From Neoechinorhynchus agilis (Eukaryota > Animalia > Acanthocephala): a stretch of DNA of 64,000 nt. The notes beneath the pieces are model-generated. The model was not told the DNA's origin, did no database searches, and was given only the letters and a program-made list of their open reading frames with translations. Both the position numbers and the translations under genes were made by a program. Position 1 is the first letter of the stretch. Each line of letters opens with the position of its first letter. This document shows positions 1,035 to 63,345 of the stretch, piece after piece. The stretch covers positions 962,389 to 1,026,388 of the forward strand of contig CM121343.1 of the NCBI GenBank assembly GCA_051530055.1, in the 5' to 3' direction.

Positions 1035-1925
1035 TTAGAGGAGTGCACCCAATGCAACTTCAAGCTCTTCCTTCATCGATTTTACCTTTCCTTTTTCGCT
1101 TTCCAGTAGACCCTCAATCTCCTCATTTTGCCGTTTAAATTTATACGCTGCTCTTTCCGCTTTCTCTTTAAAGCGTTCGGATCTCTCAACCGTCGCCGTC
1201 AGCTGCTTTACTTGCTGCTCCAGTTGAGCTTCCCGATTGTTCATTTGTGCTGCATTGTTCTTCAAAGATTGGTTTTCTTCCTTTAAAATCTTGGATTCAT
1301 CTCTTAATTTACTTAGCTCATTCTCGGTGTACGTTAAGCGTCCTACACTTTTCTCAAGCTCCACTTCGGCAATTTTTAGTTTTCTGCACAAGTCGTCACA
1401 ATTGTCGGACAACTTCGATGACCGTTCCATTTCCGTATTAAGCCGAGTTTGCAGGACATCCACTTTTTGGGTCAATTCAATAGAATGCTTTTCGAAAACT
1501 TGAAGTGATAACCGGTTTTGTTCGCTTTTTCCAACCAGTTCCTCGATTTGCAACTGACTTTTGTCAAATTTTAACTCTAGTTCAGACATTTGGTTTTCAA
1601 GCAAAAGTTTCTGTCGACGGGTGGATTCGAGTTCGAGTTCAAGGTGATTCACATGCGCATCTCGACTTGTAAGCTTTCGATCCAATGTCTCAACTTTTAG
1701 TTCGGCATCAGTTGCAGCCTTGATCGCTTGCTTAAGTTCATTTGTTAACTTGTTTATTTTGTCATTGCTGTCATTAAGGCCATTCTCCAGCATTTTCTGC
1801 TTATCACGATTCTTGACCGAATCCTCCAGTGCTTGATCCCTCTCCATTTTGAGTGCTTGCATCTTTTGCTTTATTGATTCCATTGCGATCGATGTTGTCG
1901 AACCTGTAGCTTGCGTTGTTGCCAT
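1035..1925 (-). CDS. Tropomyosin-like coiled-coil protein, single exon
   Basis: 296-aa ORF; from Met15 (1883) MESIKQKMQALKMERDQAL resembles the tropomyosin N-terminus MDAIKKKMQAMKLEKD; 282 aa from Met15, close to the canonical 284 aa; proline-free heptad-rich sequence. Confidence 0.75.
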   Translation of the reverse strand: MATTQATGSTTSIAMESIKQKMQALKMERDQALEDSVKNRDKQKMLENGLNDSNDKINKLTNELKQAIKAATDAELKVETLDRKLTSRDAHVNHLELELESTRRQKLLLENQMSELELKFDKSQLQIEELVGKSEQNRLSLQVFEKHSIELTQKVDVLQTRLNTEMERSSKLSDNCDDLCRKLKIAEVELEKSVGRLTYTENELSKLRDESKILKEENQSLKNNAAQMNNREAQLEQQVKQLTATVERSERFKEKAERAAYKFKRQNEEIEGLLESEKGKVKSMKEELEVALGALL

Positions 1926-5281: not shown

Positions 5282-6710
5282 CCTGGGCCTCCCTATGCAC
5301 TGATAAAGAAAAGATCAGACAAGATGGTGCCATTGGACTTGGCGACGAATCTTGAAGTAAGCGCAAAGAAAATAGTAACGACTTTTGGGGAAAATGGGGC
5401 TACGTCGCAGGTAATAAATGGTCTCTCAACAGTTTATGGAGAAACAAAATTACCGGACGTTGGTCGTAGAATGCATGGTAGTAACTTACTCAAGCAATAA
5501 AGTCAGTCGATACAGGAGCTTAAAATACGACCAAAGAAATCGTTATCCTAAAAGCGGACAAGGGAAATATAAAGGTAGCTCTGGAAAAAAAGAGGATCAC
5601 AATCAAAAAAATTGGTTTAATCGGGCACAGATACCTTTACTGAAACAAAGGGCCCCCTGCTAATAAGCTGACGAATAAGCTTATAAAACTTCAGAAGCAG
5701 TTCAAAGAGAAGGGATGCCTAAGCCAGGAAATATATAGACAGATATACCCAAGTGATCCAAGGATTCGGAAGATCTATGGTCTGCCAAAAATACACAAAG
5801 AAGGATGTCCCCTGAGACCGATCGTATCAATGAATGTCAGTTTCAATTATGATTTGGGAAAGTTCTTGATTAAGTAGCTGCCAATGTGAAGAATTCGAGG
5901 GAATTCGTCGAGAAACTGAGGGAGACCAACATCAAGGAAAAATGTACAATTTTCACAATGGATGTGGTATCCCTCTATACCAATGAATGCGTCGAGGATG
6001 CCATAAATGGGGCGACCCCACACCTCCTTTCGGTTCTTCAGAGAATTGACCCGAAAACACATCTCAAGAATCTGCTTGAGTTGGCCTGCGCGCCACGTTT
6101 TGAGTTCAATGGAAAGTATTATCTTCAAAAATGGGAGGAGGGTATCCATGGCTTCACAAAATGCCCCAGTTATGGCTAATCTCTTTATGGATCACTTGGA
6201 AAAAAGCGGAATGGAATCCTACGCAATTAAACCGGTCTACAACAAAAGATATGTAGATGATATATTCGTGATTTGGCCGGTAACGAACAATGTGCTAACC
6301 ATTTCATGGAACATCTCAACCGCCAACATAATGGAATCAAATCCACTATGAATAGGTCCGATGAAAATGGAAGGTTGTCGTTTCAAGATGTGTTGATTCA
6401 AAAAATGGAACACAAATTACAACATCGGTCAATTGAAAGCCAACTGATTCAAATAATTATATACGGTGGATGCTCAAAGGTTTCCTTCGTCGTGCCTACA
6501 ACCTCTACAATAATGAGTGTCTCAGTGATGAAAACCAACAGTTTAAACGAATTTTCAGGAAGTTGCGGTATCCAAAAGATATTCCGAATTCAGCGCGACG
6601 GCAAGTGGCCCGTGCGAGAAACACCCAGTAAACAAAAAACCATTAATCCGAATGGAATGTATCAGCGCATTGGAGTGTCGGACAAAGGCCAGCAGGACGA
6701 ATACGATTGA
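5282..6710 (+). mobile_element. Penelope-like element reverse transcriptase remnant (Penelope/Poseidon type), frameshifted
   Basis: Motifs across frames: IVILKADKGN, IYGLPKIHKEGCPLRPIVS, MDVVSLYTN, SMASQNAPVMANLFMDHLE, RYVDDIFVIWP, LSFQDVLI; truncated at the 118-bp array. Confidence 0.85.
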
Positions 6711-6714
6711 GGCT

Positions 6715-9700
6715 TACTAAGCCCCTAACCAGCTCCCGATTATACACAATCCGTCTTTACAGTAATGAAGCCTCCTCGCAATGTTCGAGCAATCATTTGT
6801 GTATCTCGAACGAAACGAATCCGAACGCTGCTTCCTAAGCTCTTAACCAGCTACCGATTATAAATCATCCGCCTTTACAGTTATGAAGCCTCCTCGCAAT
6901 GTTCGAGCAATCATTTGTGTATCTCGAACAAAACGAATCCGAATGCTGCTTCCTAAGCTCTTAACCAGCTACCGATTATAAATCATCCACCTTTACAGTT
7001 ATGAAGCCTCCTCGCAATGTTCGAGCAATCATTTGTGTATCTCGAACAAAACGAATCCGAATGCGCTCCTAGCTCTTAACCAGCTACCGATTATACATCA
7101 TCCGCCTTTACAGTTATGAAGCCTCCTCGCAATGTTCGAGCAAATTTGTGTATCTCGAACAAAACGAATCCGAATGCTGCTTCCTAAGCTCTTAACCAGC
7201 TACCGATTATACATCATCCGCCTTTACAGTTATGAAGCCTCCTCGCAATGTTCGAGCAATCATTTGTGTATCTCGAACAAAACGAATCCGAATGCTGCTT
7301 CCTAAGCTCTTAACCAGCTACCATTATACATCATCCGCCTTTACAGTTATCAAGCCTCGCCCTTCGAAGATTAATTTGAGTATCTCGAACAAAGCGAATC
7401 CGAATGCTGCTTCCTAAGCTCTTAACCAGCTACCGATTATAAATCATCCGCCTTTACAGTTATGAAGCCTCCTCGCAATGTTCGAGCAATCATTTGTGTA
7501 TCTCGAACAAAACGAATCCGAATGCTGCTTCCTAAGCTCTTAACCAGCTACCGATTATACATCATCCGCCTTTACAGTTATGAAGCCTCCTCGCAATTTT
7601 CGAAGATTAATTTGTGTATCTCGAACAAAGCGAATCCGAATGCTGCTTCCTAAGCTCTTAACCAGCTACCGATTATAAATCATCCACCTATACAGTTATG
7701 AAGCCTCCTCGCAATGTTCGAGCAATCATTTGTGTATCTCGAACAAAACGAATCCGAATGCTGCTTCCTAAGCTCTTAACCAGCTACCGATTATACATCA
7801 TCCACCTTTACAGTTATCAAGCCTCCTCGCCCTTCTCGAAGATTAATTTGTGTATCTCGAACAAAACGAATCCGAATGCGGCTTCCTAAGCTCTTAACCA
7901 GCTACCGATTATACATCATCCACCTTTACAGTTATCAAGCCTCCTCGCCCTTCTCGAAGATTAATTTGAGTATCTCGAACAAAACGAATCCGAATGCCGC
8001 TTCCTAAGCTCTTTACCAGCTTCCGATTATACATCATCCGCCTTTACAGTTATGAAGCCTCCTCGCAATGTTCGAGCAATCATTTGTGTATCTCGAACAA
8101 AGCGAATCCGAATGCGGCTTCCTAAGCTCTTAACCAGCTACCGATTATACATCATCCGCCTTTACAGTTATGAAGCCTCCTCGCAATGTTCGAGCAATCA
8201 TTTGTGTATCTCGAACAAAACGAATCCGAATGCGGCTTCCTAAGCTCTTAACCAGCTACCGATTATACATCATCCACCTTTACAGTTATGAAGCCTCCTC
8301 GCAATTTTCGAGCAATCATTTGTGTATCTCGAACAAAACGAATCCGAATGCGGCTTCCTAAGCTCTTAACCAGCTACCGATTATACATCATCCGCCTTTA
8401 CAGTTATGAAGCCTCCTCGCAATGTTCGAGCAATCATTTGTGTATCTCGAACAAAACGAATCCGAGTGCGGCTTCCTAAGCTCTTAACCAGCTACCGATT
8501 ATACATCATCCACCTTTACAGTTATCAAGCCTCCTCGCCCTTCTCGAAGATTAATTTGAGTATCTCGAACAAAACGAATCCGAATGCTGCTTCCTAAGCT
8601 CTTAACCAGCTACCGATTATACATCATCCGCCTTTACAGTTATGAAGCCTCCTCGCAATGTTCGAGCAATCATTTGTGTATCTCGAACAAAACGAATCCG
8701 AATGCGGCTTCCTAAGCTCTTAACCAGCTACCGATTATACATCATCCCTTACAGTTATGAAGCCTCCTCGCCCTTTCGAAGATTAATTTGTGTATCTCGA
8801 ACAAAGCGAATCCGAATGCGGCTTCCTAAGCCTTACCAGCTACCGATTATACATCATCCGCCTTTACAGTTATGAAGCCTCCTCGCAATGTTCGAGCAAT
8901 CATTTGTGTATCTCGAACAAAACGAATCCGAATGCGGCTTCCTAAGCTCTTAACCAGCTACCGATTATACATCATCCGACTTTACAGTTATGAAGCCTCC
9001 TCGCAATGTTCGAGCAATCATTTGTGTATCTCGAACAAAACGAATCCGAGTGCGGCTTCCTAAGCTCTTAACCAGCTACCGATTATACATCATCCGCCTT
9101 TACAGTTATGAAGCCTCCTCGCAATTTTCGAGCAATCATTTGTGTATCTCGAACAAAACGAATCCGAATGCTGCTTCCTAAGCTCTTAACCAGCTACCGA
9201 TTATACATCATCCGCCTTTACAGTTATGAAGCCTCCTCGCAATGTTCGAGCAATCATTTGTGTATCTCGAACAAAACGAATCCGAGTGCGGCTTCCTAAG
9301 CTCTTAACCAGCTACCGATTATACATCATCCACCTTTACAGTTATGAAGCCTCCTCGCAATTTTCGAAGAATCATTTGTGTATCTCGAACAAAACGAATC
9401 CGAATGCTGCTTCCTAAGCTCTTAACCAGCTACCGATTATACATCATCCGCCTTTACAGTTATGAAGCCTCCTCGCAATGTTCGAGCAATCATTTGTGTA
9501 TCTCGAACAAAACGAATCCGAATGCGGCTTCCTAAGCTCTTAACCAGCTACCGATTATACATCATCCGCCTTTACAGTTATGAAGCCTCCTCGCAATTTT
9601 CGAAGATTAATTTGTGTATCTCGAACAAAACGAATCCGAATGCTGCTTCCTAAGCTCTTAACCAGCTACCGATTATACATCATCCGCCTTTACAGTTATG

Positions 9701-11157
9701 AAGCCTCCTCGCAATGTTCGAGCAATCATTTGTGTATCTCGAACAAAACGAATCCGAATGCGGCTTCCTAAGCTCTTAACCAGCTACCGATTATACATCA
9801 TCCGCCTTTACAGTTATGAAGCCTCCTCGCCCTTCTCGAAGATTAATTTGAGTATCTCGAACAAAGCGAATCCGAATGCGGCTTCCTAAGCTCTTTACCA
9901 GCTTCCGATTATACATCATCCGCCTTTACAGTTATGAAGCCTCCTCGCAATGTTCGAGCAATCATTTGTGTATCTCGAACAAAACGAATCCGAGTGCGGC
10001 TTCCTAAGCTCTTAACCAGCTACCGATTATACATCATCCGCCTTTACAGTTATGAAGCCTCCTCGCCCTTCTCGAAGATTAATTTGTGTATCTCGAACAA
10101 AGCGAATCCGAATGCGGCTTCCTAAGCTCTTAACCAGCTACCGATTATACATCATCCGCCTTTACAGTTATGAAGCCTCCTCGCAATGTTCGAGCAATCA
10201 TTTGTGTATCTCGAACAAAACGAATCCGAATGCTGCTTCCTAAGCTCTTAACCAGCTACCGATTATACATCATCCGCCTTTACAGTTATGAAGCCTCCTC
10301 GCAATGTTCGAGCAATCATTTGTGTATCTCGAACAAAACGAATCCGAATGCGGCTTCCTAAGCTCTTAACCAGCTACCGATTATACATCATCCACCTTTA
10401 CAGTTATCAAGCCTCCTCGCCCTTCTCGAAGATTAATTTGTGTATCTCGAACAAAACGAATCCGAATGCTGCTTCCTAAGCTCTTAACCAGCTACCGATT
10501 ATACATCATCCACCTTTACAGTTATCAAGCCTCCTCGCCCTTCTCGAAGATTAATTTGTGTATCTCGAACAAAGCGAATCCGAATGCTGCTTCCTAAGCT
10601 CTTAACCAGCTACCGATTATACATCATCCGCCTTTACAGTTATGAAGCCTCCTCGCAATGTTCGAGCAATCATTTGTGTATCTCGAACAAAACGAATCCG
10701 AGTGCGGCTTCCTAAGCTCTTAACCAGCTACCGATTATACATCATCCACCTTTACAGTTATCAAGCCTCCTCGCCCTTCTCGAATTAATTTGTGTATCTC
10801 GAACAAAGCGAATCCGAATGCCGCTTCCTAAGCTCTTAACCACCTACCGATTATACATCATCCGCCTTTACAGTTATGAAGCCTCCTCGCAATGTCCGAG
10901 CAATCATTTGTGTATCTCGAACGAAACGAATCCGAATGCCGCTTCCTATGCTCTTAACCAGCTACCGATTATACATCATCCGCCTTTACAGTTATGAAGC
11001 CTCCTCGCGATGTTCGAGCAATCATTTGTGTATCTCGAACAAAACGAATCCAAATGCGGCTTTCTTAGCTTTTAACCACCTACCGATTATACATTATCCG
11101 CCTTTACAGTTATGAAGCCTCGTCGCACTGTTCGAGCAATCATTTGTGTATCTCGAA
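6715..11157. repeat. 118-bp tandem satellite array, ~37-38 monomers, two interspersed variants
   Basis: ORF starts recur at 118-bp multiples (8052, 8170, 8288, 8406...); variant A tcgcaatgttcgagcaatcatttg versus variant B tcgcccttctcgaagattaatttg. Confidence 0.97.
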
Positions 11158-16742: not shown

Positions 16743-17330
16743 TTAAACCTCAAGACATTGGAACTTCCCGGCGAGAGAAAAACCAGGCATAAGACAAATC
16801 ACGGATTCCAGAAAATGCAGATAGTTTAGTCGCTGTTGGCCCGAATCGGCAAAAACAGTTTCCACCAGGCGTTGAAATTTCGTTGGAATTAGTAGAAGGC
16901 GGGATATTATCGGTGAACGAATACCTAAGAATTATTAAACCATTGATCGCTTGTTGTCTGTGTAGAATTGGTGGCTATCTAGAGGCCTCCCAATAAATTT
17001 AAAATAAATAATATACCAATACTAAAGAACAGTTCTTTTTGACGAATGATATTAAAGTCAAAAATCGGATTTTAAAAAATGAAATACCTCGTGCCTTTCG
17101 AAACGAATTAAAATAATCTCCGCATTAATTTAGTTTTTTACTAGAAAGCAAACTAAACGCGAATTCGCTTTGTAAATGAAGCGACGCCGAAACACAAATG
17201 AATGATCGAAAAGGAAGGGGAGGCTTCAAAACTTTAAAGACGGATGATATCTAATCAGAAGCTTGTTCGAAGCTAACACGGCGCTATCCCTGAGCCGATG
17301 AACTGGCTGAGTTTGACATTTCGTAGTTGT

Positions 17331-17402
17331 GTCGAGGTGGTCAAGTGGACTAATGCCCGTGATCCCGATTAGGGGTCAAGTGGTTCGAATCCGTTACCAC
17401 CA
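17331..17402 (+). promoter_or_regulatory. tRNA-like sequence with Pol III internal promoter (A and B boxes)
   Basis: A box TGGTCAAGTGG 17338-17348, B box GGTTCGAATCC 17382-17392; T arm AGTGG/CCGTT, anticodon-like arm GATCC-CGATTAG-GGGTC, stem GGTGGT/ACCACC; D arm and variable loop are non-canonical, so not called a functional tRNA. Confidence 0.6.
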
Positions 17403-17419
17403 ATGACGCACAGCCAAAG

Positions 17420-17485
17420 GGGACGAAATACCGCTGAAGGGAGGAAACTCACTGATGAGTCCCGCCTCCTCGGGAGGTATCTGAG
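17420..17485 (+). ncRNA. Candidate non-circularly permuted hammerhead ribozyme, copy 1
   Basis: GGGAC-GAAA-TACC ... CTCA-CTGATGA-GTCCC ... GGTA-TC-TGAG: stem II GTCCC/GGGAC, stem III ATACC/GGTAT, stem I CTCA/TGAG; predicted cleavage after C17481. Confidence 0.65.
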
Positions 17486-17879
17486 GATCCGGAGGAATGT
17501 ACAAACTCTTAACCGTGCATTAGAGACTATGTGGTTATATCACTTCTCTGATGTAATTGGTTTGGCTTTATGCCTAAATAAAATCAGCCGGACAAGAAAG
17601 GGATTGTCTAAAATTGAAGTATCTTAACAATTAGCAATCGGATTCGTGCTGCTTGAGATATTTAAATGAATGCTTGAAAAGGTCTGGGTGGCTTCATAAC
17701 TTTAAGGACGGATGATGTCTAATCGGGAGCTGGTTGGGAGCTTAGCAAGCCGCAATCGGATTTCCCCTGCTCAAGATAATCAGATGAGTGCCCGAAAAGT
17801 AAGGGGAAGCTTTATAACTTTAAAGACAGATGATGTCTAACCGGGGCAACTTTCTTATTTAAAGTTTTAATATTTCGTT

Positions 17880-19670
17880 ACAAAAATAAACGCGCGAGTA
17901 TTACTTCTAATAATACGTTTATTTGTAGGTTAATGAAACAATGGACCCATGTATCTGTGGGTCCTTTGAACACTAATGCGCAGAAGAGATTGTGAGGTTT
18001 TGAGGTTGGGTCTTTCCTCCGGTTCAAGATAATTTAAATTTTCATGCCAAAATTTAATTTTGGTTCCAAACAGACCTTGAACGTGGTTTCGTTTTTGTGG
18101 TTGAATTATTTTGGTCCGTTATTTGGCTTTTGATTTTGGTTGGTTTATTTATCAACACGTTTTATAAATTTAAGAAAAGCGCGATCCACACACTTGCCAG
18201 CATCTATCTTTCCTGAAGGTGTCTGGATGTCGGATGTTGAGGTAAGGGAGGTGGGACTGGTTTTTGAAGGGGTGTTGATGTGGGATCGGAGGCTTTGTAA
18301 GCGAGATGACAGATTAAGTCTTTCCTTGTTCTCCGGTTATTAAGGAAAGATTGGGCTTGGGGGAGGCAAGATTTTTGGTAGAGGGTGGTACGAGCGAGGG
18401 ATGAAAAAGGTTGGGGTTACGGGTGTTTACGAAGGAAGAGTATTTAGAGATAAAAGAAAATTGGGGAGGGGGTTGAAGAAGACGGAGGACGTTTTTGGAG
18501 AAAATGGAGTGGAGGTGGGTGTCGAGGGGAGGGAGTGAAGTCCCGAATATTCTCTCTGCTCTCTTGTGGAAGGTCTCGAGGGAATGGAGAGCATTGACGG
18601 AGAGGGGGAGGAAAGTGGGGGAAAGCGTATGTAAGGATAGGAAGGATGGTAGAAAGATAAAAGTGAGCAAGGTGTTTAGGGGATACGCCGAGATGCCGGA
18701 GGAGTTTGAGAAGGTAAAGACGAGGGTTTGCTTTTGAGAGGGTAAATGAAATGTGGGTATCCCATTTAAGGTTTTCTTGGAAAGTCAGGCCCAATATTCG
18801 GAGAGAAGAGGAGCGTTAAATGGGGAGAGGGAGAGGCGCGGGGATAAGGTTGCGTTTGGAAATGTGGGGGAAAAGCTCAAAAGATTTGGACAAATTTAGG
18901 AAGAGGTTTAGGGTGGAGAGCGAGGAAATGAGATGGGTGATCTCGTCCATGGTTGTGGAGAGAGAGGGAGAAGCGATGGTAATGACTGTGAGGTCATCTG
19001 CATAAGGAAAATATTTGGTAGAGGGAGCGAGGGGATGGAGGTCATTTAGAAAAATGTCAAAGAGGAGAGGGGAAAGTACGGCGCCTTGGAGGACCCCTTT
19101 AAATACGGGCAGAGAGGAAGAACAAGAAGTTCCACATTGGATATATTGTTTGCGGTTGGAGAGGAAAGAGGAAATCCAAGCGAGTTGCCAGATTGGGAGG
19201 CCAAAGGAAGCACATGATTGGAGGAGAAGGGAGTGATCTACCGACTCGAAGGCCCTGGAAACATCGAGTTGCACGAGACAGACGGTTGATGCTGGACTGG
19301 AATCTAAGCTGCGCACAAGCGTATCGTAAAAGCAGAGGAGGGCATCAGAACAAGAGTAATTGGGACGGAAAGCGAATTGGGAAGGGGAGATGTTTTTGAG
19401 GAAGGGAAGTAGGCGGGTTTTAAAACATTTTTCTAAGATTTTAGAGAACGTTAAGAGGATAGAGATGGGACGAAAGGATGTGGGGGAAAACGGTTTATCG
19501 TTTTTGGGAAGGGGGACGACACGGGCTTCCTTAAGACACGATGGGAAAGAGCCCAGTAGAAAGCTAAGGTTCGTTATGTGCGTTAGAGGATCGATAAGTT
19601 CCGGGATGATGAAACGAATGGCCCAATTTGGGATAGTCGAATCAGGGGATCCGACGAATGGAATAAGCTG
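17880..19670 (-). mobile_element. L2/Crack/CR1-type LINE, 5'-truncated ORF2 (RT) and 3' UTR
   Basis: PLPK...SFRPISILLTFSKILEK, QFAFR, DVSRAFESVDH, GVLQGAVLSPLLF, YADD; post-RT LGLTFQENLKWDTHI...KANPRLYLLKLL; 3' stem-loop GGACCCA-CAGATACA-TGGGTCC at 17943-17964 followed by AATAAA. Confidence 0.85.
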
Positions 19671-20365
19671 ATGCATACCATCAACGGTAATCCGGTCTAC
19701 GTTCCTTATCTGCCATTGGCTTACCAAATGTATGCAATTTACCATTTTTTAATCCTATGGAACACTGCTTGATTATTCAGGCGCATTGTTTAATCTTTTC
19801 CCCCTTTTATTTTGTTTGACAATCGGCGCACTGATTTATTAGTCTTTTGTTTTTCCAAGCTTTCGCCGATTAACGGCCTCTTCAGGGATCTACAATGGTG
19901 AAGTGGAGAAGTGAGACTCATAACAGTGACATTGAAGCGGATAGCTCGTCCCGTTTGTTGAGCGATTCCCGAGGTACTTTACTCGCTTCATCGGTGACGG
20001 ACCCATTATCGCTTTCCCTACCTACCGCCCGGGATATCAATAACGCCTCGGCAATCGAGAGCTCTACGGGGTCCCGTGCCACAAACCTGACCTGGGTGAT
20101 AATCTCTACTTTCCCATCACGGTGGAGCTCCGCTTGGTGCTTTGTCCAGGGTGTGGCTATGTACGATTTTGCGTCCAGATTTAACGCGCTACGAACGTGC
20201 TTCGTGATACGTTGACGTAAGGGCCGTTCCGTTTTTCCAATATAAGTGACCTTGCGATTAGCATCGTTCAGGCATCGCTTGCACTCCATCTCATAGACAA
20301 CGTTGCCTCGAGTGCAAATCCAATTGCGTCCTCCATTTTTCAAGGTCCTTCCCGGAGCATAGGCG
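19670..20365 (-). mobile_element. Inverted terminal arm (pLTR-like) of the Penelope-like element, carrying an intact GIY-YIG endonuclease segment
   Basis: ORF 19918-20343: CTRGNVVYEMECKRC...YIGKTERPLRQRITKH; 19793-19925 is the reverse complement of ~23698-23830. Confidence 0.85.
19847..19895 (-). ncRNA. Minimal type I hammerhead ribozyme (Penelope-associated)
   Basis: TTGT-AGA-TCC-CTGAAGA-G-GCCG-TTAAT-CGGC-GAAA-GCT-T-GGA-AAA-ACAA on the minus strand; same motif as 23727-23775. Confidence 0.7.
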
Positions 20366-28150: not shown

Positions 28151-29424
28151 ATGCTGAGTGCAAGAGTTGTTTCTTCATGTCGCGTGAGTGTTGGTGTTCA
28201 ACGTGCGGGAAGTTTATTTTCTTAATTTAGTCATTGAGTGGTTTGTTCACCACGCGGGTTCCGGTTGTTAGCTCGACGAGGCAATATCGTTCTGGATTGC
28301 CATATAACACGGTGATTGAATTCGTTCCTCAGCAGGAGGCGTGGATAATAGAGAGGATGGGTCGATTTTACTGTATTCTTCAACCGGTAATTGATTAGGC
28401 GAAGGTAAACAACATCTATAATGTTTTCCGTTGTTGATAGGGTCTAAATTGGCTGGTACCTGTGATTGACAAGGTCAAATATGTTCAAAGCCTCAAGGAA
28501 ATCGCGATTGAAGTTCCCCAACAAAGCGCCATAACGAAAGGTTTGTTTTCTGGATCATTTCGTTGAATTTATCGTGCTTGCAGACAACGTGACTCTTCAC
28601 TTGGACGGTGTATTGTACCTGAAAGTGGTAGATCCATACAAAGCGAGCTATGGGGTCGAAGATCCGGAGTTCGCCGTCACTCAATTAGCCCAGACAACCA
28701 TGAGATCGGAAATCGGTAAGATTAGTTTGGATAATGTTTTTAGAGAACGCGATAGTCTTAATATTGCGATTGTTGGTAGGTTTCTTGTTCTGTCGAAAAT
28801 AAGGTTTTTATCCGGGTTTTTCTAGAGGCGATCAATAAGGCTGCGATGGCTTGGGGAATATCGTGTATGCGGTATGAGATCCGCGATATCAAACTGCCAC
28901 CGCGAGTCCACGAGGCAATGATAATGCAGGTCGAGGCTGAACGAAAAAAGCGAGCCGCTATTCTCGAATCCGAGGGAACCAGAGAAAGTGCCATCAACAC
29001 TGCTGAAGGGAAAAAAATTGCCACCATACTTAACAGTGAAGCTATAAAACTTGACCAAATCAATAAGGCTAACGGCGAAGCTGAGGCCATTATTGCGAAA
29101 GCAAAGGCTACAAGTGAAGCACTGAAAAGGATCTCGGACGCTCTTAGTGGAACGAATGGTTCAGGGGCGGCATCACTCTCAGTTGCAGAACAATACGTCA
29201 AAGCTTTTGGTCAGTTCGCCAAGAATACAAACACTCTCATTTTGCCGGCTGGTACTGGGGACATTTCTTCAATGGTTACTCAGGCAATGAGCGTTTTCAA
29301 AATTGTTGAAAAAAGTGCCGCGACACAGATTCAATCCACAGAATACAGCCCAGATCAAGAGAAATCGGAAAAGGCCTCTCATACAAGTGATAATCCAAAT
29401 GAAACGCCCAAACAAAATGAATAA
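28151..29424 (+). CDS. STOML2: Stomatin-like protein 2 (SPFH/Band 7), 5 exons
   Basis: Spliced product: LPYNTVIEFVPQQEAWIIERMGRF..ILQP|GLNWLVPVIDKVKYVQSLKEIAIEVPQQSAITK|DNVTLHLDGVLYLKVVDPYKASYGVEDPEFAVTQLAQTTMRSEIG...|EAINKAAMAWGISCMRYEIRDI...QVEAERKKRAAILESEG; four ~47-54 nt GT-AG introns. Confidence 0.95.
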
Positions 29425-41817: not shown

Positions 41818-42139
41818 TAAAACCGGGGGACATGATTCGCCAACGTACAAGATATTGATTTATTATTCTCAATATTTTGTCCGTCTCGTTGGACTTCTTC
41901 AAATCGTTAGTTATTAATAGAAGCTCACGATCTCTTCTACAGCTATGCGAAATAACGGTTAGAAGCGTAGGGTCGCCATTAAAGACAGTTTTGACCAATT
42001 CGTTTAGTTTTGGAACGACGTTTATGATGGAACGTAAAAGTCTTACAAATGTGGCTTAAGATTCTTATATGGCGAACAAAGTAACGACTTCTAAAAACAA
42101 TTTTAATCTAACAATAAAAACTATACGCAACCTTAAGGT

Positions 42140-42220
42140 CTTTGAGTACGAGGCAATGCTGTTAGCGTGATAGCCACAGTTGAAGAAGGAGAGAAGGTCC
42201 GATTTTGCGGACGGTGGTGA
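42140..42220 (+). mobile_element. Short CRE 3' tail fragment
   Basis: RGNAVSVIATVEEGEKVRFCGRW* followed by the same ttgttg tail as the other copies. Confidence 0.65.
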
Positions 42221-42338
42221 TTGTTGGAAAATTGAATTCAATTAGGAGTTGTGTGTTTATTTATCGAACTTTTTTAGAGAAACAATTTTATTTTTAAATG
42301 TTTTTACTGGCAAACCGGTTCTTTTAATTCAGATTCAT

Positions 42339-42586
42339 GACATCCCTTCCTCGGTCTTTTAGTTTTTCTTTTTGGCATGAAGCGAGGATGAAATACCTCG
42401 TTGAAGGAATAGGAAACTCACTGATGAGTCGTGCCTCTTCGGGAGGTATCTGAGGATCTGGACGGGGATTCGTACAAACTCTTTACCGTATGAATTTGAT
42501 TCTCAGTGATTCAATCACTTCTCTGATACGAGAGATCGGTATGGCATCATGCCAAAAAGAAAGACAGAAGCCGAGGAAGAGATATC
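42339..42586 (+). ncRNA. Second copy of the permuted-hammerhead element, with ~40-bp imperfect terminal inverted arms
   Basis: GAT-GAAA-TACCTC...CTCA-CTGATGA-GTC...GAGGTA-TC-TGAG (42387-42454); arms 42339-42380 and 42547-42586 are complementary; downstream gtacaaactct and tcacttctctgat shared with copy 1. Confidence 0.6.
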
Positions 42587-44559
42587 CCAACTCTGAATAT
42601 AACAATAATTTATTAATTATACTTGTTCACTTTTAAGTGTACAACAGTGATTAAATCAAGAAATACTGTGAATTATACGTTATTTTGATATGTTTAAGTT
42701 GTTGATCTTTATCGTGTTGTTTGAGGAATGATGCATTTTGTAGCAGGATTTCGCCAATATGTTCGGATAGTTGATGACCTCGACTGAAAAAGTTTTGGAT
42801 TTAAATAACCCATGTTTTCAATATATTTAAGATTTAACTTCAATGCCCTTGTACATTAGCGTTTGCTAGTTTTAAAATCTTTTTAAATTGTTTAATGTCT
42901 AATTTTTCATTTAGAATCAAAATTGTATCCTAAACATTTTAATGCTATTTAACATCGTTACAAATTGATTTCTTATTATTAATTTTAGTTTCTTGTTAAT
43001 GGCTAAAACTTTAGTTTTATTAGGATTAATCTGGAGACACTTCATCCATGCATTGTTGGTAAAAAGAATAGCACTTATCCGCATAGATGACCGTTTTAAT
43101 ACCTCTTCTGTTAATAGTTGAAAGAAATTGCATGGCTATTGTTGGAGCAAATGAACAATTAAATGTCAAACTGAAATGGAGGGATTTATTCGAAGAGAAA
43201 GGATGTGGTATAAGTCTGCATAATTAATTGTTGGTGAATTAGCTTTGGCTCCTTTGTCTATTGCGCCCTATCAATGTCAATCCATAAATTGATTCTGTCA
43301 GCCCTGTCAGATGTATGTACCCAATTGTAAGGCAACTTTCCTTCATCCGCTGTTCAGGCGGACGTCCCCGTGAATAAACGACCAAACCAGCGATAGTCAA
43401 AATAGCTTTGTTGTTTAGCCCTAGGTCCGGTAGTCTTTAATAGACGCCTAAATTTCGCTAGATGGGGGTTGGTGAGAAACTAGTTATGAAAGTATATCCC
43501 AGGGAATCATAGGAACACTGTCGTGTATTCTAAATGTAGATCATGTTAATATATTGATTTGACGCATTTTCAAATAGGTTTTTAGTATACATGGAGCCAA
43601 TACCCATACGGAGTCGGCAGGATCACTTTTAGAGCTATTCTCATCGTGCAAAACTTTTCTCTTATCTGTAGTGGATTCTTTGTTTGCTCTATAATGTTTA
43701 TTTAAGAAAAACTATGAATAAGGATTTCAGGCTTCTTATTGCGCCAAATTTATCGAGGATTACTAAGGTAAATTTCTTGATCCCCTTCCCCCCGCGGGAA
43801 ATGAAATTTTTGATTGTAATTGCACCTTTTATTCCCGATGTTTCGTTAAATTCAAAAGGTCCTACACGTAAAAAGGATTATACTATTTTCCAAGGAAACT
43901 CTGGGCATTCATTCACCCTCAGAGCTTACTGAAAACTATTTCCTAAAGATGCTACAAGATTGAATAATCTCTTCATCCTAGCTGAACTCGCCGAAAGATT
44001 TGAAGTTGAGGACTTTCATTGCATTGAATCTGAATTAGGAGTTAAACTGATTAAATATTTGTTGTAATCTATGTTCGGTGTCCTTGAATGTTGCGATATC
44101 AGTTTGCCGGCTACATTTTTTGAGTTCCTCGAATACTTCTACGACTTAAACCTGAAAATTTGTCCGAAAAGTGCTTGAAGGAATCACATTAAATCTTAAT
44201 ACACTTTTGAACTTTTAGGCATAATGTGCTCAGCTCCCCACATTGAAAGTGGATCTAAATCCAAGGGAACGATCAAATGGGCCAATTATGGCAATGTTCG
44301 TCCTGATTTACCGCCAGCTTACACGTTCACTAAGAAATATTTTAATTAGACCTGTGGTAAACATAATCCCGGGCATGAAATACTCCAGCTTAAATTGTAG
44401 AAAACTTACAAGCAATGTTTGATAAGGAGGTTGAGGCCCCGCAAAAATTTGAATGTTTACAAATAAATCTCGAGAAAGTGTAAATTATTTAATCTTCACA
44501 AATTTTCGACAATGACAACTACAATTTGTTGTCTTCAAATGTTATGTTTGTTCGGCAGC

Positions 44560-52125: not shown

Positions 52126-55100
52126 TTTTCTAGGTTTTACAATAATAAGGCACAAAACGTGCAATCACCACCGTCCGCAAAATTGGAGCTTCTCTCTTTC
52201 CTCGGCTGTCGTTATCACGCTAGTAGTACTGCATCGTTGTACTGCGAGCGAGATATTTTGTCGCAGAAATACACCTGCTCGTGCGTCGCCGGTCGTTTCT
52301 CCCACCCAAGGCTCCATACGTTTCCACGGCAAAAGGGACGAAATGGTAATTCCTTAGGAGCTCTATATTTTGAACGCTTTCGTTCCTCCGCTACGTGTCC
52401 TCGTGGTAAATTTGATTGTACTTTGGCGAATCCTGTCTCATTTATTTCAGAAATTTTTTTCAGTTTTAAACTTTTATTTGTAGAACATAATAAAGTACAA
52501 AACGTGCAATCACCACCGTCCTCAAAATTGGAGCTTCTCTCTTTCCTCGGCTGTCGTTATCACGCTAGCAGCATTGCCTCGTTGTACTGCGAGCGAGATA
52601 TTTTGTCGCAGAAATACACCTGCTCGTGCGTCGCCGGTCGTTTCTCCCACCCAAGGCTCCATACGTTTCCACGGCAAAAGGGACGAAATGGTAATTCCTT
52701 AGGAGCTCTATATTTTGAACGCTTTCGTTCCTCCGCTACGTGTCCTCGTGGAAAATTTGATTGTACTTTGGCGAATCCTGTCTCATTTATTTCAGAAATT
52801 TTTTTCAGTTTTAAACTTTTATTTGTAGAACATAATAAAGTACAAAACGTGCAATCACCACCGTCCTCAAAATTGGAGCTTCTCTCTTTCCTCGGCTGTC
52901 GTTATCACGCTAGCAGCATTGCCTCGTTGTACTGCGAGCGAGATATTTTGTCGCAGAAATACACCTGCTCGTGCGTCGCCGGTCGTTTCTCAATTTCTTC
53001 TAAAGATCCTGGAGCAGAGTGCCGAGCTGCCAAGCGCTCCATACGTCTCTACTCCGAAGGGAACAAAATAGTGGGCCCTTGCTAATTCTCTATATTTTCG
53101 TACCTTCTTCCCTTCTGCTGCACTGGCTACACCTCCAGCGATTTCGAACGAGTAGGGAATGTTGCTTACTGCGAGGGTGTCCACACACGTGGCGTCCCAG
53201 AAAAGGCATTTGCCATCCCACCACGGAAAGACCGAAATTCCGTCAGGTCGACGACCGTCTAGTCGACAAAGATGGACGGGTTCCAGGATGCTTGGGAAGT
53301 TCGCCGTTCTCAACGCCCGAGAAATTACGCTGTTGTCGCGAGAACCTGAAAGTAGAGAGCTGTGAGTTCTCGCGGCGAAAGGCCTTTCCCAGATCGACTG
53401 TCTAAGGCCATTCACTGGAACATGGTTAGCGCCTGTCTGCTGGCACCATTCTTCAACTGCCACCACAAAGTCTTGGTCAAGATAAAACTTTTCCTCCAGA
53501 ATTTTCTTCACTATTGGTTGACTCCCCTGATACGATCCAAGAAAGGCTGGGAAGGCAAGGTCTACTAGCGGGCGAATGCCTATTCTCCCAGATGACATAG
53601 GCAATGAAGCTTGTCGCCACTCCTCATCTGAGAGCTGGATATTTAAAATACGCTTGAGACAAGACCTTGTCGTCGAGCTTAGCCAATCCTTCCTTATGTT
53701 TGAAGAATGTTGCTTTGGGGATACCGAGTGCGTTCTTTATTAGAAATAACGCTTCGTGAGCCTAGGGCCGCTCACCCTATCGCACAGCAACGAAAGTTTC
53801 GGTATGATACGGCCGATCTCAGCTTCCACATGTGAATCAAAGACGCAACTTTGCTCTGGAATCACGAGTTATGGACCTCGAACCCATACATTAGCTCCTT
53901 GACTTTGGCGGCGTCTTCGATATTTAATACTAGAAAACTCACACTTTCCAGCATTAAGCTCAACGCCCAATCTCGTAGTCTCCATAATTAGTGTCTCCAG
54001 ATCGCGCAGTAGAACGGAGCTATCACCTTCGAGCGTAGCGTCATCCAAGTACCAAGCGTTGAAGCTGGAATGGAGAGAGTGCGCTATTGGATTTACTGTT
54101 AGGGAGAATGCGATTGGACCGAGAGGATCTCCTTTCTGCGCTCCTCTTTCGGACCAATTGAGGTGGTTTTCGAAAAGCAAAGAAGTCGCGGTCCCGTAGG
54201 CATTGAGAAAATACTGGAAGGCTTCTGGCCCGTGATCCCGAATTGCGCGGAACATGCTTTCTCCATTGAGAGAGTTAAAGGCGTTCTGAAAATCACACTT
54301 AAGAATCACGCACTTCCGCCCCGCAGGATGTGCAGCAGCCCAGTTAGACTGGGCGAAGTTTCTGCCCGGTTTTCTCTGTGATACGTTTACAGAGAATTTT
54401 CCTTGCAAGTCGCCGTATCGTCGAAGATACGGCGATTGGACGAATCCTGCCTTTTTTTGTGAGGGCACATAATGCTTCGAAAAATAGGTCTTTTGCAACG
54501 GGATTCCGTTCCCCTCCAGTCAGTCGCTCGGCTAACCGAGAAAGCGCACTTTCTAGAGAGAGCTGCTTCACCAATTGTAAAGGACATTATGTCCTTTAGG
54601 TGCTAAGGCCTTAGCGCGTCAAGCCCATGACCCGAACCACTTGCAAAAGATGAGATGGCATTTTTTAACTCTAAAATTTGAGTGGGTGCCCTATTTCGTA
54701 TGGGAGGAGGTATAATTTCAAAACTGTCACTACTGCATGGGTGTTTTGACCGGAGTATTTGTAGCGTCTCGCTGTCTCCTTTTGCGAAACTGTCGGAGGA
54801 TAACAATAACCGAACGGCCCCGCGAACATCTCCGTCCGCTAGCTTGGAAGAAACACGTTCAGTCAGTGATCGCTTTGAAAAACGGCAACAAAACCCTCCC
54901 TTCGTACGTCCATTACGAACCTCGCGAAATTTCATTTCGAAATTGTTAAATATTTGTTCGAAGGAGACCACCCTTTCTTTGATTGTTGATGTCAAAGACA
55001 CCCCAGAATCATCACTGGTTCAAAGGACTAAGCGCGGGAATGCGAAGAGCCGTGCCCATGATGGCGTACAGTTCTTTTGGAGGCAATGGTTGCGCAATCC

Positions 55101-56154: not shown

Positions 56155-57530
56155 TTATTTTTCTCCCATCAAGTTCATAACCATTTCGATTTCCTTACTT
56201 TTATACTTAAGAGAATCATATCGACGTCTTACTTCACCATTTTTGAACGTTAGTCTAGAAAGTCCTTCAAGCACGTTGGATACAAAATGATGAGATCTTT
56301 TGACAAACTCCATATCTCCCGCCAAGGCAGCACTGATGGTGAGCAATCGAATCCGCGAACAAGTTGACATTAGTGCCATAAAATACGTGTCGAGATCAAT
56401 GCTGATTTCTGAAATATCTCGATCACCTAAGGATATCATTGAAATTTCTCGACAATAATGAATTTGTAATCGCACCAAAAAGTAATTTTTGAACACCATT
56501 ATAGCTATATAGCTTATCATATTTAAGAAAGCAGAAACTCAGGATTACTTCGCTAACTGAACGTAGTTGACCAGCGAATATGTTGTAGTGCCTAGAAGAT
56601 TTGAAACGGTAATAAGATTCAGTCGAAATGGGCACATAGCATTGAAAGCATATTTTATTGAAATACTTCGCGAGGAAGTCAAATAGCGATCTCGCGTACC
56701 CGGGCCCCACCATAGAACTAAATTCCATTTTGACGATTAACGACGCCTCCTAACGAAATATCTCGATTTTAACAAAATATGTTTTATCCCGCCCGAAAGA
56801 TTTCCTCTTAATGATTACTTGAAGTACACAATTAATTGAAATATTTCGCGAGGAAGTCGAATAGCGATCTCGCGTACTCTAGCCACGCAAAACAACTAAA
56901 ATCTTTTTAGACGATTAACGACGCCTCCTAACGAAGTATCTCGATCTAATAAAATATGTTTTATCCCGCCCGAAAGATTTCCTCTTAATGATTACTTGAA
57001 GTTCACATTTTATTGAAATATTTCGCGAGGAAGTCGAATAGCAATCTCGCGAACTCGAGCCACACAAAACAACTAAAATCTTTTTAGACGATTAACGAAG
57101 CCTCCTCGCGAAATATCTCAGTAAAATATATTTTATCAGGGGTCACTCTAAGGATTTTCTCTTAATGATTACTTGAAAAATTGTTCATTTGGTGCTACGT
57201 CGATAATAGAGGATAAGTATTGTTTAAGATCGCCTATACCGCTTTCCATCAACGATGTGTACTCTGGAAAAGAAAGATTGTTATTTGAAGAAGGGAAGCT
57301 TTTTGAATCTACCTTCTATCCGTGAATGATCCGCTTGGCATAATACGAGCTCAATTGTTAACTTGTCGTTTTGCTTTCTCAACTCGTAAGTAGCTTGCTT
57401 GATCTTCTTTACAGAAAAATTACGACAAAAACAGTGGACAGAAAATCTATACTTTTTGATCTTTATTCTCTTGTTCGATAGTATCCAGAGTATTGTGGTA
57501 CAAGCTTCTTATTGTTTCAAATACTTCCAT
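56155..57530 (-). CDS. TSN: Translin, 5 exons
   Basis: Spliced: MEVFETIRSLY...EQENKDQK|KIKQATYEL...|EYTSLMESGIGDLKQYL...APNEQFFK|HYNIF...FLKYDKL..NGVQKLLF|GDRDISEISIDLDTYFMAL...AGD...LTFKNGEVRRRYDSLKYKSKEIE, matching translin PAEQYYR, FHLDVEDYL, VTAGD and LNLKNDSLRKRYDGLKYDVKKVE. Confidence 0.85.
56645..57177. repeat. ~3 monomers of the 180-bp satellite inside translin intron 3, inverted relative to 61495-63345
   Basis: Reverse complement matches cgcgagatcgctattcgacttcctcgcgaaatatttcaataaaat...; ~181-bp period. Confidence 0.9.
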
Positions 57531-59357: not shown

Positions 59358-61263
59358 TCAATACATCCGGACTCGTTTATTTTTTTGGCGTCCATTACCA
59401 CTCCAGCGTTTCTTGTTTCTGAAATCACCGGACCGTTTCAACGTTGGTCGACGTCCGTGTCCGTTAGTTCTTGGCTCATTCATTGATTCGCCGAACAATT
59501 CATCAGGAGTTACAAGTTCTTTGGGGAGCTCACATGCAATACTTAGCTTCAAGCTCCTGCTATCGTGCCAAGAACTTGTTATATGTGGCACCAGTCGATT
59601 ACTCACCTCGAAGAATGCATTAAGTTTGTCGTCAGTGAATAAGATTTTCCCAATGTCTTTTCTAGGGTCGAAGTCCACGGTTTCTCCAAATGCCCGACGT
59701 AAAAAGAATATAATGACTGAGCATGACTGAAAGGCGAGCGTAGTGTTCAAATGGTAACTTGTGAACCCCGATCGACCCGATAATAGCGACGCGTTGGTGT
59801 CGACATTCTCGGATGACGATATGACCGCAAGTGCGGATGCGAGTGCTTCACGCGGACTCATTTTTGCAAGAATTTCGTCTGCAGATTCCATGAAACTTTC
59901 TTGGACGTCCGCGGTTATTGATGCTAGACTCTGGAAAGCGTCCCGGACGCGTGCCTTCATTAGATCAGAACTTGTGGGCGCTGGTACACGTTTGAAACGA
60001 ATATTCGTATGCACTTCGAGATTCTGAAGTTCATTTCGCTGCCTTGACTTATAGAGACAAATGCATCTACCCTTCCTACCGGCCCTTCCGGTTCGTCCAC
60101 TGCGATGTACATATTGATCTGAATCAATAGGAGGAGCCGTGACGACGACTAAGTCCACATTGGGGATATCGAGACCACGGGCAGCAACATCGGTCGTTAC
60201 CAAGACCCGATACTTTCCTTCCCTGAAACATTGCATTACCATTTCTCGTTTGTCCTGTGGAATGTCACCGTGTATTTCGTTGATTATCGTTTGTTTTATT
60301 TAAAGAAGACAACATCAGACGATAATCATTGAAGTTTAAAACATGACAGTCGAGATGAACGAGATTACTTGTGCTGAGCGCATCGGCTTCTTTTTTAGTA
60401 TCGCAAAAAACTATTGCTTGTCGGTGCAGGCCACAGTAACATCTTAGAATATTGGCGATCGTCTCTTCCCGTTCGGAGAATTCACATTTGATAGCGTAGT
60501 GATCGACACACGTTGAGGTTTGCAGTGAATCGTCTCCAACGAGATCAATGATTTTCGCTTTCGCCCCTTCACAATACTTGACGGCTGCGTCGTGAACCCA
60601 CTTGGGTACAGTTGCGGAGAAAATGAGTGTTTGTGGCCTAATCAGAGACTCTTTGTCCGTGGAAAAGTAAGGAGCGTAATTCAAAATGGTTTCCACGTCG
60701 TCCTTGAATCCCATATCCAACATCCGATCACATTCATCCAAAACCACACATTTCAAATAATCGAATGTGAACACTTTCTTCTCAAGATGATCTTTTATAC
60801 GTCCGGGAGTACCCACGATCATCGTTGGCTTTGATTTCCGGATTTGTTGAGCCTGCATGTAAACGTTAGAAGCGCCGCCATACAAGCACATCGCCCTCAG
60901 TTCCGGATAAAGCCATCGGACTGTGTCGAATGTCTGCTTAGCCAACTCCCGAGTCGGTGCCATCACTAAACAAAGTGGCCAGTTCGGAGATCTCGTGCTC
61001 GATCTCAACGTCTCGACGATGGGAAGCAAAAATCCAAGAGTCTTTCCAGTCCCAGTTCGCGACCTCACTATTACATTATAACCGCGAACAATTAACTTAA
61101 ACGTAGACACTTGGACCGGAAACAAATACTCGATCCCACGATCCCTTAGGTTCTTCTTTGTCTCTTCACTTAGTGAGAAGTTCTCAAACGCACCCGAAGT
61201 ACGAGCAATCTCATCACCTTCCGCTTCTATCATCCTTCCCAAAAACCAAAAAGTTCTTCTCAT
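59358..61263 (-). CDS. DDX21: DEAD-box RNA helicase of the DDX21/DDX50 family with GUCT domain; reading frame interrupted at 60276-60339
   Basis: Q motif LFPVQ, SRTGTGKT, PTRELA, TPGR, DECD, SAT, HGDIPQDKRE, TDVAARGLDIP, YVHRSGRTGRAG, then SLLSGRSGFTSYHL...AFFEV GUCT-like region and a basic tail; start codon uncertain; DDX21 and DDX50 cannot be distinguished. Confidence 0.88.
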
Positions 61264-61494: not shown

Positions 61495-63345
61495 AAAAGG
61501 GGGCGTCGTTAGTCGTCAAAATGGAATTTAGCTCTATTGTGTGGCTCAGATACGCGAGATCGCTATTCGACTTCCTCGCGAAATATTTCAATAAAATGTG
61601 AACTTCAACTAGTCATTAAGAGAAAATCTTTCGGGCCGGATAAACATATTTTATTAGATCGAGATATTCCGTTAGGAGGCGTCGTTAATCGTCTAAAAAG
61701 ATTTTAGTTGTTTTGTACTGCGTTGTTCGGGTACGCGAGATCGCTATTCGACTTCCTCGCGAAGTATTTCAATTAAATATATACTTCAACTAGTCATTGA
61801 GAGAAAATCTTTCGGGCCGGATAAACATATTTTATTAAATCGAGATATTCCGTTAGGAGGCGTCGTTAATGGTCTTAAAAGATTTTAGTTGTTTTGTATT
61901 GCGTTGCTCGGGTACGCGAGATCGCTATTCGACTTCCTCGCGAAATATTTCAATAAAATGTGAACTTCAACTAGTCATTAAGAGAAAATCTTTCGGGCCG
62001 GATAAACATATTTTATTAAATCGAGATATTCCGTTAGGAGGCGTCGTTAATGGTCTAAAAAGATTTTAGTTGTTTTGTATTGCGTTGCTCGGGTACGCGA
62101 GATCGCTATTCGACTTCCCTGCGAAATATTTCAATAAAATGTGAACTTCAACTAGTCATTAAGAGAAAATCTTTCGGGCCGGATAAACATATTTTGTTAA
62201 ATCGAGATATTTCGTTAGGAGGCTTCGTTAATCGTCTAAAAAGATTTTAGTTGTTTTGCGTGGCTAGAGTACGCGAGATCGCTATTCGACTTCCCTGCGA
62301 AATATTTCAATAAAATGTGAACTTCAACTAGTCATTAAGAGAAAATCTTTCGGGCCGGATAAACATATTTTATTAAATCGAGATATTCCGCTAGGACGCG
62401 TCGTTAATGGTCTAAAAAGATTTTAGTTGTTTTGTTTTGTGTGGCTTGTGTACGGGAGATCGCTATTTGACTTCCTCGCGAAGTATTTCAATAAAATGCG
62501 TACTTCAAGCAATAAATAAGAGAAAATCCTTCGGGCCGGATAAAACATATTTTACTAGATCGGGATATTCCGTTAGGAGGCGTCGTTAATGGTCGAAAAA
62601 GATTTTAGTTGTTTTGTATTGCTTGGCTCGGGTACGCGAGTTCGCCATTCGACTTCCTCGCGAAATATTTCAATTAAATATAGACTTCAACTAGTCATTG
62701 AGAGAAAATCTTTCGGGCCGGATAAACATATTTTATTAAATCGAGATATTTCGTTAAGAGGCGTCGTTAATGGTCGAAAAAGATTTTAGTTGTTTTGTAT
62801 TGCGTTGTTCGGGTACGCGAGATCGCTATTCGACTTCCTTGTGAAATATTTTAATAAAATGTGAACTTCAACTAGCAATTAAGAGAAAATCTTTCGGCCC
62901 GGATAAACATATTTTATTAAATCGAGATATTTCGTAAAGCGTCGTTAATGGTCGAAAAATACTAGTTATTTTGTATTGCTTGGCTCAGAGACGCGAGATC
63001 GCTTTTCGACTTCCTCGCGAAATATTTCAATTAAATGTGGACTTCAACTAGTCATTTAGAGAAAATCTTTCGGGCGGGATAAAACATATTTTATTAAATG
63101 GAGATATTTCGTTAGGAGGCGCCGTTAATGCTGATAAAAGATTTTAGTTGTATTGTATTGCGTTGCTCGTGTACGGGAGATCGCTATTCAACTTCCTCGC
63201 GAAATATTTCAAGAAAATATGTACTTCAAGTAATCATCAACAGAAAATCCTTCGGGCCGAATAAAAATACTTTATTGAATCTAAATATTTCGCGAGACGG
63301 CGTCGTCAACCGTCTAAAAAGATTTTAGTTCTATTGTGAGGCTCG
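61495..63345. repeat. 180-bp tandem satellite array, ~10 monomers
   Basis: tacgcgagatcgctattcgacttcc recurs at ~61551, 61731, 61911, 62091, 62271 and onward. Confidence 0.95.

Follow-up and report, generated by a model that had tools for sequence, protein, structure and literature searches.

A head-to-head composite in a mobile element family with a G-C-S hammerhead motif from Neoechinorhynchus agilis

Introduction

SINEs are normally tied to LINEs, and the Sm-alpha repeat of Schistosoma, reportedly described by Ferbeyre et al. in 1998, is said to bear a hammerhead of the canonical type I. Hammerheads are typical both of the pseudo-LTRs of Penelope elements and of animal retrozymes (PMC4209133, PMC7229834), the latter being defined by type I hammerheads in tandem repeats and by abundant circular RNAs (PMC7229834). 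A preprint from 2026 makes the case that animal retrozymes derive from Penelope as non-autonomous elements (Li, Clavereau and Pollet, doi 10.64898/2026.07.22.740005). Penelope-like elements themselves show the head-to-head architecture that we describe below, together with one-sided tails of 30-40 bp (Craig et al. 2021, PMC8557442, section 6). A permuted form of the ribozyme, the type-GCS hammerhead, is represented by a single bacterial example that has no covariation support and was found to cleave only slowly in vitro, at 0.014 per min (PMC10085705, NAR 2023).

Here we analyse a stretch of 64,000 nucleotides from the acanthocephalan Neoechinorhynchus agilis (hereafter the window), which holds two dispersed copies of a repeat with a hammerhead motif in this permuted order. 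An earlier note on this DNA had interpreted the repeat as a mobile, non-coding, non-autonomous element whose RNA would fold into a closed rod. We find that a mobile, multi-copy retroelement with a hammerhead motif is supported, while a rod-forming design is not. Our reading of copy 2, to which we assign a probability of roughly 0.6, is that it represents a dead composite left by the Penelope-style insertion of a SINE-like or retrozyme-like acanthocephalan family.

Results

Anatomy of the element

Copy 1 is a simple insertion into satellite DNA (Table 1). The spacing of the satellite units at this site is 468 instead of 118, and the insert plus any target duplication therefore amounts to 350 bp. 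The last ~20 nt of copy 1 fit both the element tail and a duplicated target (satellite phase 88-105), and because of this overlap the target duplication is ambiguous. The same 118-bp satellite forms an array of 38 units with 92% identity at 6697-11157, and the diverged units that host copy 1 (17155-17845) lie on the opposite strand.

Judged from copy 1, the canonical element is ~350 bp long. Its 5' leader is followed by a tRNA-like module containing an A and a B box, by a hammerhead motif in the non-circular G-C-S order, by a conserved body, and by an A-rich 3' region with an AT-rich tail. The A box matches at 10 of 11 positions and the B box is exact, being the only exact B box in the window; neither ARAGORN nor the Rfam tRNA model makes a call on the module. 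Copy 2 has neither the tRNA-like promoter module nor a B box. The element is non-coding and of low GC (0.41-0.46 in the two copies), with no LTR, PBS or PPT. A protein search with the longest open frame (84 codons, over copy 1) found no relatives. Within the window there is no poly(A) tail and no likeness to the LINE-like RT region. Neither locus holds a tandem array, and among the listed joints none goes back within the element.

The two copies have in common a stretch with 77% identity (17421-17578 and 42386-42557), including the downstream blocks gtacaaactct and tcacttctctgat that the earlier note had already pointed out. Their flanks are unrelated, so that the copies are independent and the segmental duplication which the note had considered falls away. 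No further family copies were found within the window. The 5' leader of copy 1 has no homology to the left arm of copy 2 (p ~0.7), and the likeness of the arm region to the 3' end of copy 1 alone is not significant. From these alignments the 3' regions of the two copies appear either to have diverged or to come from different subfamilies.

Table 1 Coordinates of the features of copies 1 and 2 and DNA read depth across copy 2, in positions of the window
Feature	Position	Strand	Basis or remark
Copy 1, simple insertion into a diverged 118-bp satellite unit	~17285..17635	+	Unit spacing; alignment of both flanks with the satellite consensus
tRNA-like module of copy 1	17331..17402	+	A-box-like 17338-17348; exact B box 17382-17392; read from sequence
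Copy 1 hammerhead motif, order G-C-S	17420..17490	+	Read from sequence; pattern search
Copy 2, inverted, 5'-truncated 3'-terminal fragment: left arm plus ~30-nt tail (42294-42323)	42294..42383	-	Relatives' contigs on the minus strand; depth
Copy 2, direct copy, 5'-truncated, starting at the equivalent of copy 1 position 17421, without tRNA-like head	42385..42602	+	Homology; breaks of relatives; no B box
Left arm of inverted repeat	42324..42383	+	Pairs with 42544-42602
Right arm of inverted repeat, native 3' region of the direct copy	42544..42602	+	Gapped alignment; DNA depth of 42552-42598 ~5x single copy
Copy 2 hammerhead motif, order G-C-S	42384..42459	+	Read from sequence; pattern search
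Copy 2 block G	42384-42389; 42390-42393; 42394-42399	+	Stem II strand; GAAA; stem III strand
Copy 2 block C	42412-42420; 42421-42427; 42428-42433	+	Stem I strand; CUGAUGA; stem II strand
Copy 2 block S	42443-42449; 42450; 42451-42459	+	Stem III strand; C17; stem I strand
DNA depth 2,957	42270-42316		Half a bin, placing the start of the repeat near 42294
DNA depth 5,862	42317-42363		Left arm
DNA depth 7,009	42364-42410		
DNA depth 84,536	42411-42457		Ribozyme core, ~1000x the single-copy level of 83.8
DNA depth ~11,500	42458-42551		Body
DNA depth 440	42552-42598		Distal right arm, nearly unique
DNA depth 83.8	from 42599		Single copy

A hammerhead motif in the G-C-S order

Both copies contain GAAA, then CUGAUGA, then UC at the predicted cut site. 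In copy 1, stem II has 5 bp (17420-17424 with 17459-17463, including G10.1-C11.1), GAAA lies at 17425-17428 and CUGAUGA at 17452-17458. Stem III (17428-17434 with 17474-17480) forms 6 of 7 pairs, including A15.1-U16.1, with one G-A mismatch, and stem I has 4+3 bp; the predicted cut falls between 17481 and 17482. In copy 2, where cleavage is predicted between 42450 and 42451, the core is intact and, just as the earlier note had reported, stem III has 7 bp. The note was equally right that stem II of this copy is decayed: a G-U pair at 10.1-11.1 and two mismatches reduce it to 3-4 pairs. Most relatives carry other letters than copy 2 at the stem II positions 42389, 42431 and 42432, and we therefore regard copy 2 as a decayed copy.

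A search with the core pattern found it at two places in the window but in none of the shuffles, and a metagenome scan with it returned 0 matches. Rfam gave nothing at the gathering level across the whole window, and neither a hammerhead nor a tRNA model matched either copy at E up to 10, where the only matches were chance ones, e.g. to a long-hairpin miRNA model. The missing hammerhead match is expected, since the G-C-S order is pseudoknotted. In block order, in the intact core and in the three stems that can be drawn, the motif of both copies appears to be of type GCS, and RNA of the family would on this basis be predicted to cleave itself.

Copy 2 is a head-to-head composite

Copy 2 consists of an inverted 90-nt tail fragment set against a direct copy of the element. 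Both pieces are truncated at the 5' end and meet there with at most 1 nt between them (42383/42385), and the 3' end of the direct copy lies somewhere in 42602-42630. Contigs of the relatives reveal where each piece begins. The closest relatives of the core, with ~90% identity (contig records 3, 11, 12, 19 and 27), lose their likeness to copy 2 at 42385/6, though they run 90-385 nt further. The relatives of the left arm (contig records 18 and 26) align on the minus strand over 42294-42381 and end there, and the loose ends behind 42383 are the reverse complement of body sequence that is found at 42528-42543 in the direct copy. This strand and this continuation identify the arm, in the relatives, as the normal 3' region of the element, preceded by the body and followed by the ~30-nt tail. 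That tail is common to the relatives and the left fragment and is absent from the right copy. Since both pieces hold the same 3' region, copy 2 contains a 60-nt inverted repeat.

The junction is specific to this locus. The copy 2 locus is matched without difference by one contig from the DNA run (41850-43200) and by one from an RNA library (42165-42415), and these exact matches establish that the junction is real. In the one contig alignment made, at 80% likeness, none of the relatives' contigs spans the joint between arm and core. Other contigs hold head-to-head junctions with other breakpoints, such as a loose end ...ACATCCCT joined to 42507, and a short arm-loop-arm foldback after 42371. 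Same-strand joints, from 42335 or 42368 to 42411, are present as well. A candidate for a target duplication around the composite (42281-42293 and 42601-42614) is not significant (p = 0.24).

The arms form a significant inverted repeat that is longer than proposed

The arms quoted in the earlier note are located at 42339-42383 and 42544-42586. They form an inverted repeat with a 22-nt seed of 91% identity in the repeat finder, which a gapped alignment stretches to 60 nt at ~80% identity. Its score of 56 compares with a shuffle mean of 15 and was reached in 0 of 2000 shuffles, and the arm duplex is predicted at -62.3 kcal/mol against -17 +/- 6 in 200 genomic controls of the same geometry. The note's claim of complementary arms around the ribozyme is thus borne out as to their existence. 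Their extent had been underestimated: instead of ~40 nt, the repeat runs beyond the proposed termini and into the common tail motif (TTCAGA / TCTGAA). The ~20% divergence between the arms of copy 2 indicates an old insertion.

Folding of the 248-nt RNA of copy 2 places the arms in a ~40-bp closing stem with a branched interior (z = -7.15). The proposed closed rod is not recovered; the structure is a stem with a branched head and not viroid-like. We note that the pairing of the arms is symmetric between the strands (-62.3 and -65.2 kcal/mol, with two G-U pairs each). Equal pairing on both strands gives no sign of selection on RNA structure, and it is what an inverted duplicate made at the DNA level is expected to show.

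Copy 1 lacks significant arms. The weaker version that had been described there is at the level of chance in local alignment (p = 0.14), and its duplex energy of -22.2 kcal/mol is attained in 6% of the shuffled sequences and in 7% of the genomic controls. Arms are therefore not kept across the copies, a result which the earlier note itself had named as one that would speak against its rod. Most likely, then, the hairpin arose as a by-product when copy 2 was inserted and does not belong to the design of the element.

One further likeness concerns the arm region itself. The stretch 42562-42578, or 42343-42359 in reverse complement (AAAGACCGAGGAAGGGA on the element strand), resembles the block of copy 1 that comprises GAAA and stem III (17426-17442) at 14 of 17 positions. 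Taken alone this likeness is not significant (p ~0.15); a partial tandem could have left it behind as a vestige.

Read depth and transcription

Four runs from this organism, one of DNA and three of RNA, contain the locus, in all cases as assembler contigs, which carry no molecule ends or circle junctions; neither circular nor unit-length RNA of the family was seen among them. The family is present in many copies: summed over contigs aligned at 80% likeness, DNA depth rises from ~42294, at the start of the inverted fragment, to ~35-70x single copy and peaks over the ribozyme core, although such depth sums are not copy numbers (Table 1). Two neighbouring stretches are likewise of high depth. A fragment of a 345-bp tandem repeat (52142-52991) lies at 42129-42223, 70 nt upstream of the composite, and reaches ~950x single copy, as high as the hammerhead core; a further high-copy stretch at 41847-41940 reaches ~120x.

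In run X4, one RNA contig skips a 50-nt interval of the plus strand with GT..AG ends (41958-42007), which is retained in run X3. The removal of this interval by splicing indicates that a spliced Pol II transcript of the plus strand runs toward copy 2. Exact RNA contigs extend to 42415, and no RNA was found beyond 42598. The copy 2 locus is thus probably transcribed by read-through and not from a promoter of its own, and in such an RNA the ribozyme would come to lie inside a long stem. For the family core, the ratio of RNA to DNA depth (0.017-0.033) does not exceed the ratio in the flank, where transcription is weak, which indicates no bulk over-expression in these libraries of unspecified type.

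Two arm-containing relatives are abundant in RNA. The first (42323-42371) has an RNA depth of 1012 in X3, at most ~2 in X2 and 0 in X4, at a DNA level of 1.5-3 copies. The second, with the joint from 42368 to 42411, has an RNA depth of ~275 in X2 and in X4. Both are most simply explained as fragments embedded in expressed genes.

Elsewhere in the window, arrays of a 177-181-bp satellite (56652-57177 and 61535-63337) lie in opposite orientations, and a DEAD-box helicase gene with DEAD, Helicase_C and GUCT domains (59358-61263, minus strand) is found between them. Host gene fragments are represented by a tropomyosin-like ORF (1035-1925, minus strand) and a Band 7 / stomatin-like ORF (28846-29424, plus strand).

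Discussion

A probable Penelope-type origin of the composite

In copy 2, the minus-strand fragment 42294-42383 abuts a plus-strand copy running from 42385 to ~42602, which is the inverted, 5'-adjacent arrangement of Penelope-type insertions. Since this layout is a published hallmark of Penelope-like elements, it points to Penelope-type mobilisation of the family. By this mechanism, which like Pol III transcription of the full-length copies we infer, reverse transcription would be primed from 3' ends of the element RNA on both nicked strands of the target. Dual priming of this kind would produce an inverted, 5'-truncated copy adjacent at the 5' end, with a tail on one side, as is typical of Penelope-like elements. 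By analogy with those insertions, the family is probably mobilised in trans by a Penelope-like element of the GIY-YIG/RT kind.

The earlier note had left the choice between Penelope and LINE reverse transcriptases, and we find the former plausible. In LINE twin priming it is a segment further upstream that becomes inverted, and the 3' end is not duplicated; this does not fit copy 2, and we rejected twin priming for that reason.

The window contains pieces of possible machinery. A GIY-YIG ORF (19918-20343, minus strand) carries the Penelope-type pattern Y..C..C...YIG.T.R.L..R...H; its Pfam match has an E of 3e-4 and, at 21.4 bits, lies just below the cut-off of 22.6. This ORF is located directly upstream of a LINE-like RT ORF (18816-19745, minus strand; RVT_1 E 2e-30) with FRPIS and YADD motifs, whose best solved relatives are R2 and L1. 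The pair lies ~1.2 kb from copy 1 and is either a mosaic in which remnants of two retroelements adjoin or an element with an N-terminal endonuclease (Naiad-like). The RT ORF is the only intact one nearby, and its LINE-like character counts against a Penelope reading. No autonomous Penelope-like element with the family's 3' end is present in the window.

Alternative explanations

The strongest alternative, which we nevertheless consider unlikely, invokes two unrelated events without Penelope-type integration: either a short inverted copy landed later at the 5' edge of an older copy, or the 3' region was duplicated in inverted orientation at the DNA level, through a fold-back or a template switch during replication or repair. 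Of the two arms, the left one has the greater likeness to the relatives, which would also fit two events or two templates. This is seen in the DNA depth (5862 at 42317-42363 vs 440 at 42552-42598) and in the private changes, ~3 in the left arm vs ~9 in the right, a difference that is our own reckoning from contigs and alignment and is not significant. The duplication bracketing the composite is not significant either, so that a single insertion event is not proven, and the nearest RT is LINE-like. Against two events stands the abutment of the two truncated 5' ends within 0-1 nt, which would be unlikely for independent insertions. In addition, several other head-to-head junctions with different breakpoints show that the arrangement is recurrent.

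The design proposed in the earlier note, a distinct tRNA-less subfamily whose RNA forms a closed stem or rod around the ribozyme and amplifies in this form like a retrozyme or viroid, we judge to be improbable. It would account for the strong fold (z = -7.15) and for the fact that the arms stop right at the 5' edge of the ribozyme. The same-strand joints from 42368 to 42411 (RNA ~275 in X2 and X4) and from 42335 to 42411 (DNA ~1.5 copies) also reveal other loci with an arm upstream of the core. However, the closest relatives break at 42383/42385 and none of their contigs crosses that junction, the arms of copy 1 are at chance, and the DNA run holds hardly any other copies of the distal right arm. 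The pairing of the arms has no strand asymmetry, and both the inverted repeat and the likeness to the family go past the proposed termini. The left arm is in fact the 3' end of the element itself, copied in inverted orientation, and copy 2 is without the promoter module and has a decayed stem II. A single ribozyme, moreover, splits an RNA into two parts, and no unit that could circularise is set free in this way.

The arms might also be read as the terminal inverted repeats of a MITE-like DNA transposon. This has in its favour the 60-nt inverted repeat, the small size and the lack of coding capacity, but it is very improbable, given that copy 1, with its exact boundaries, has no terminal inverted repeats, that the arm in the relatives is an internal 3' region followed by the tail, that the target duplication is not significant, and that 5'-truncated copies with variable junctions are traits of a retroelement.

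Meaning of the composite

If copy 2 is a dead, Penelope-style composite, its hairpin is ordinary and yet informative: a composite that keeps both 3' ends is a footprint of Penelope-type integration and, as such, points to the machinery that spreads a tRNA-headed, hammerhead-bearing repeat. If Penelope-like elements spread a SINE-like element, this would connect SINEs to the animal retrozymes. Among candidates for the G-C-S permutation of the hammerhead, for which the literature holds one doubtful bacterial case, this family alone is populous. The distinction between an intact element (of the copy 1 type) and a dead composite (copy 2) tells experimenters which sequence to assay.

A more ambitious proposal, which we offer tentatively and on balance doubt, is that the family is a SINE with a tRNA head and transcription by Pol III, that it relies on machinery of the Penelope type (GIY-YIG/RT) in place of that of a LINE and has a working type-GCS hammerhead, and that its recurrent composites give rise to ribozyme-containing long-hairpin RNAs with a role of their own. 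Were this true, the family would be the first eukaryotic and the first well-populated example of the G-C-S permutation, and the hairpin RNAs could serve, e.g., as precursors of small RNAs against the family.

Comparison with known systems

The family differs from the Sm-alpha repeat of Schistosoma, with its canonical type I hammerhead, in the G-C-S order of the motif. With tRNA-derived SINEs it has in common the tRNA-like module upstream of the ribozyme in copy 1, the short length, the dispersed copies and the A-rich 3' region. Unlike in such SINEs, neither ARAGORN nor the Rfam tRNA model identifies the module, a poly(A) or LINE-derived tail is missing, and copy 2 is headless.

The likeness to the published type-GCS hammerhead (PMC10085705) lies in the order of the G, C and S blocks, in the presence of GAAA, CUGAUGA and UC, and in the three stems that can be drawn, copy 1 being nearly intact. 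The published case is bacterial, whereas the motif described here belongs to an animal repeat with ~1000 copy-equivalents, and its cleavage is a prediction.

Similar to the metazoan non-LTR retrozymes (Cervera and de la Pena 2020, PMC7229834), the family is non-coding, of ~200-400 bp and low GC, multi-copy, and equipped with a hammerhead; as in the genomes that host retrozymes, Penelope-like sequences are present too. In contrast to retrozymes, copies 1 and 2 are single and dispersed, and their motif is G-C-S and not type I (C-G-S). At these loci the family thus lacks two defining features of retrozymes, the type I motif and the tandem units.

In the manner of insertion the family resembles Penelope-like elements (PMC8557442; doi 10.64898/2026.07.22.740005), with which it has in common the heavy 5' truncation and a hammerhead on board; the insertion of copy 1 into a satellite is a further likeness, and the extra ~30 nt on one side of copy 2 may correspond to their one-sided tail. 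Unlike those elements, neither locus has an RT/EN ORF or a pseudo-LTR, no direct partial duplication (partial tandem) being found at either copy. The hammerhead is G-C-S and not the minimal type I of Penelope pseudo-LTRs, and the tRNA-like head is not a Penelope trait. In sum, the element works like a non-autonomous, Penelope-associated, hammerhead-bearing retroelement.
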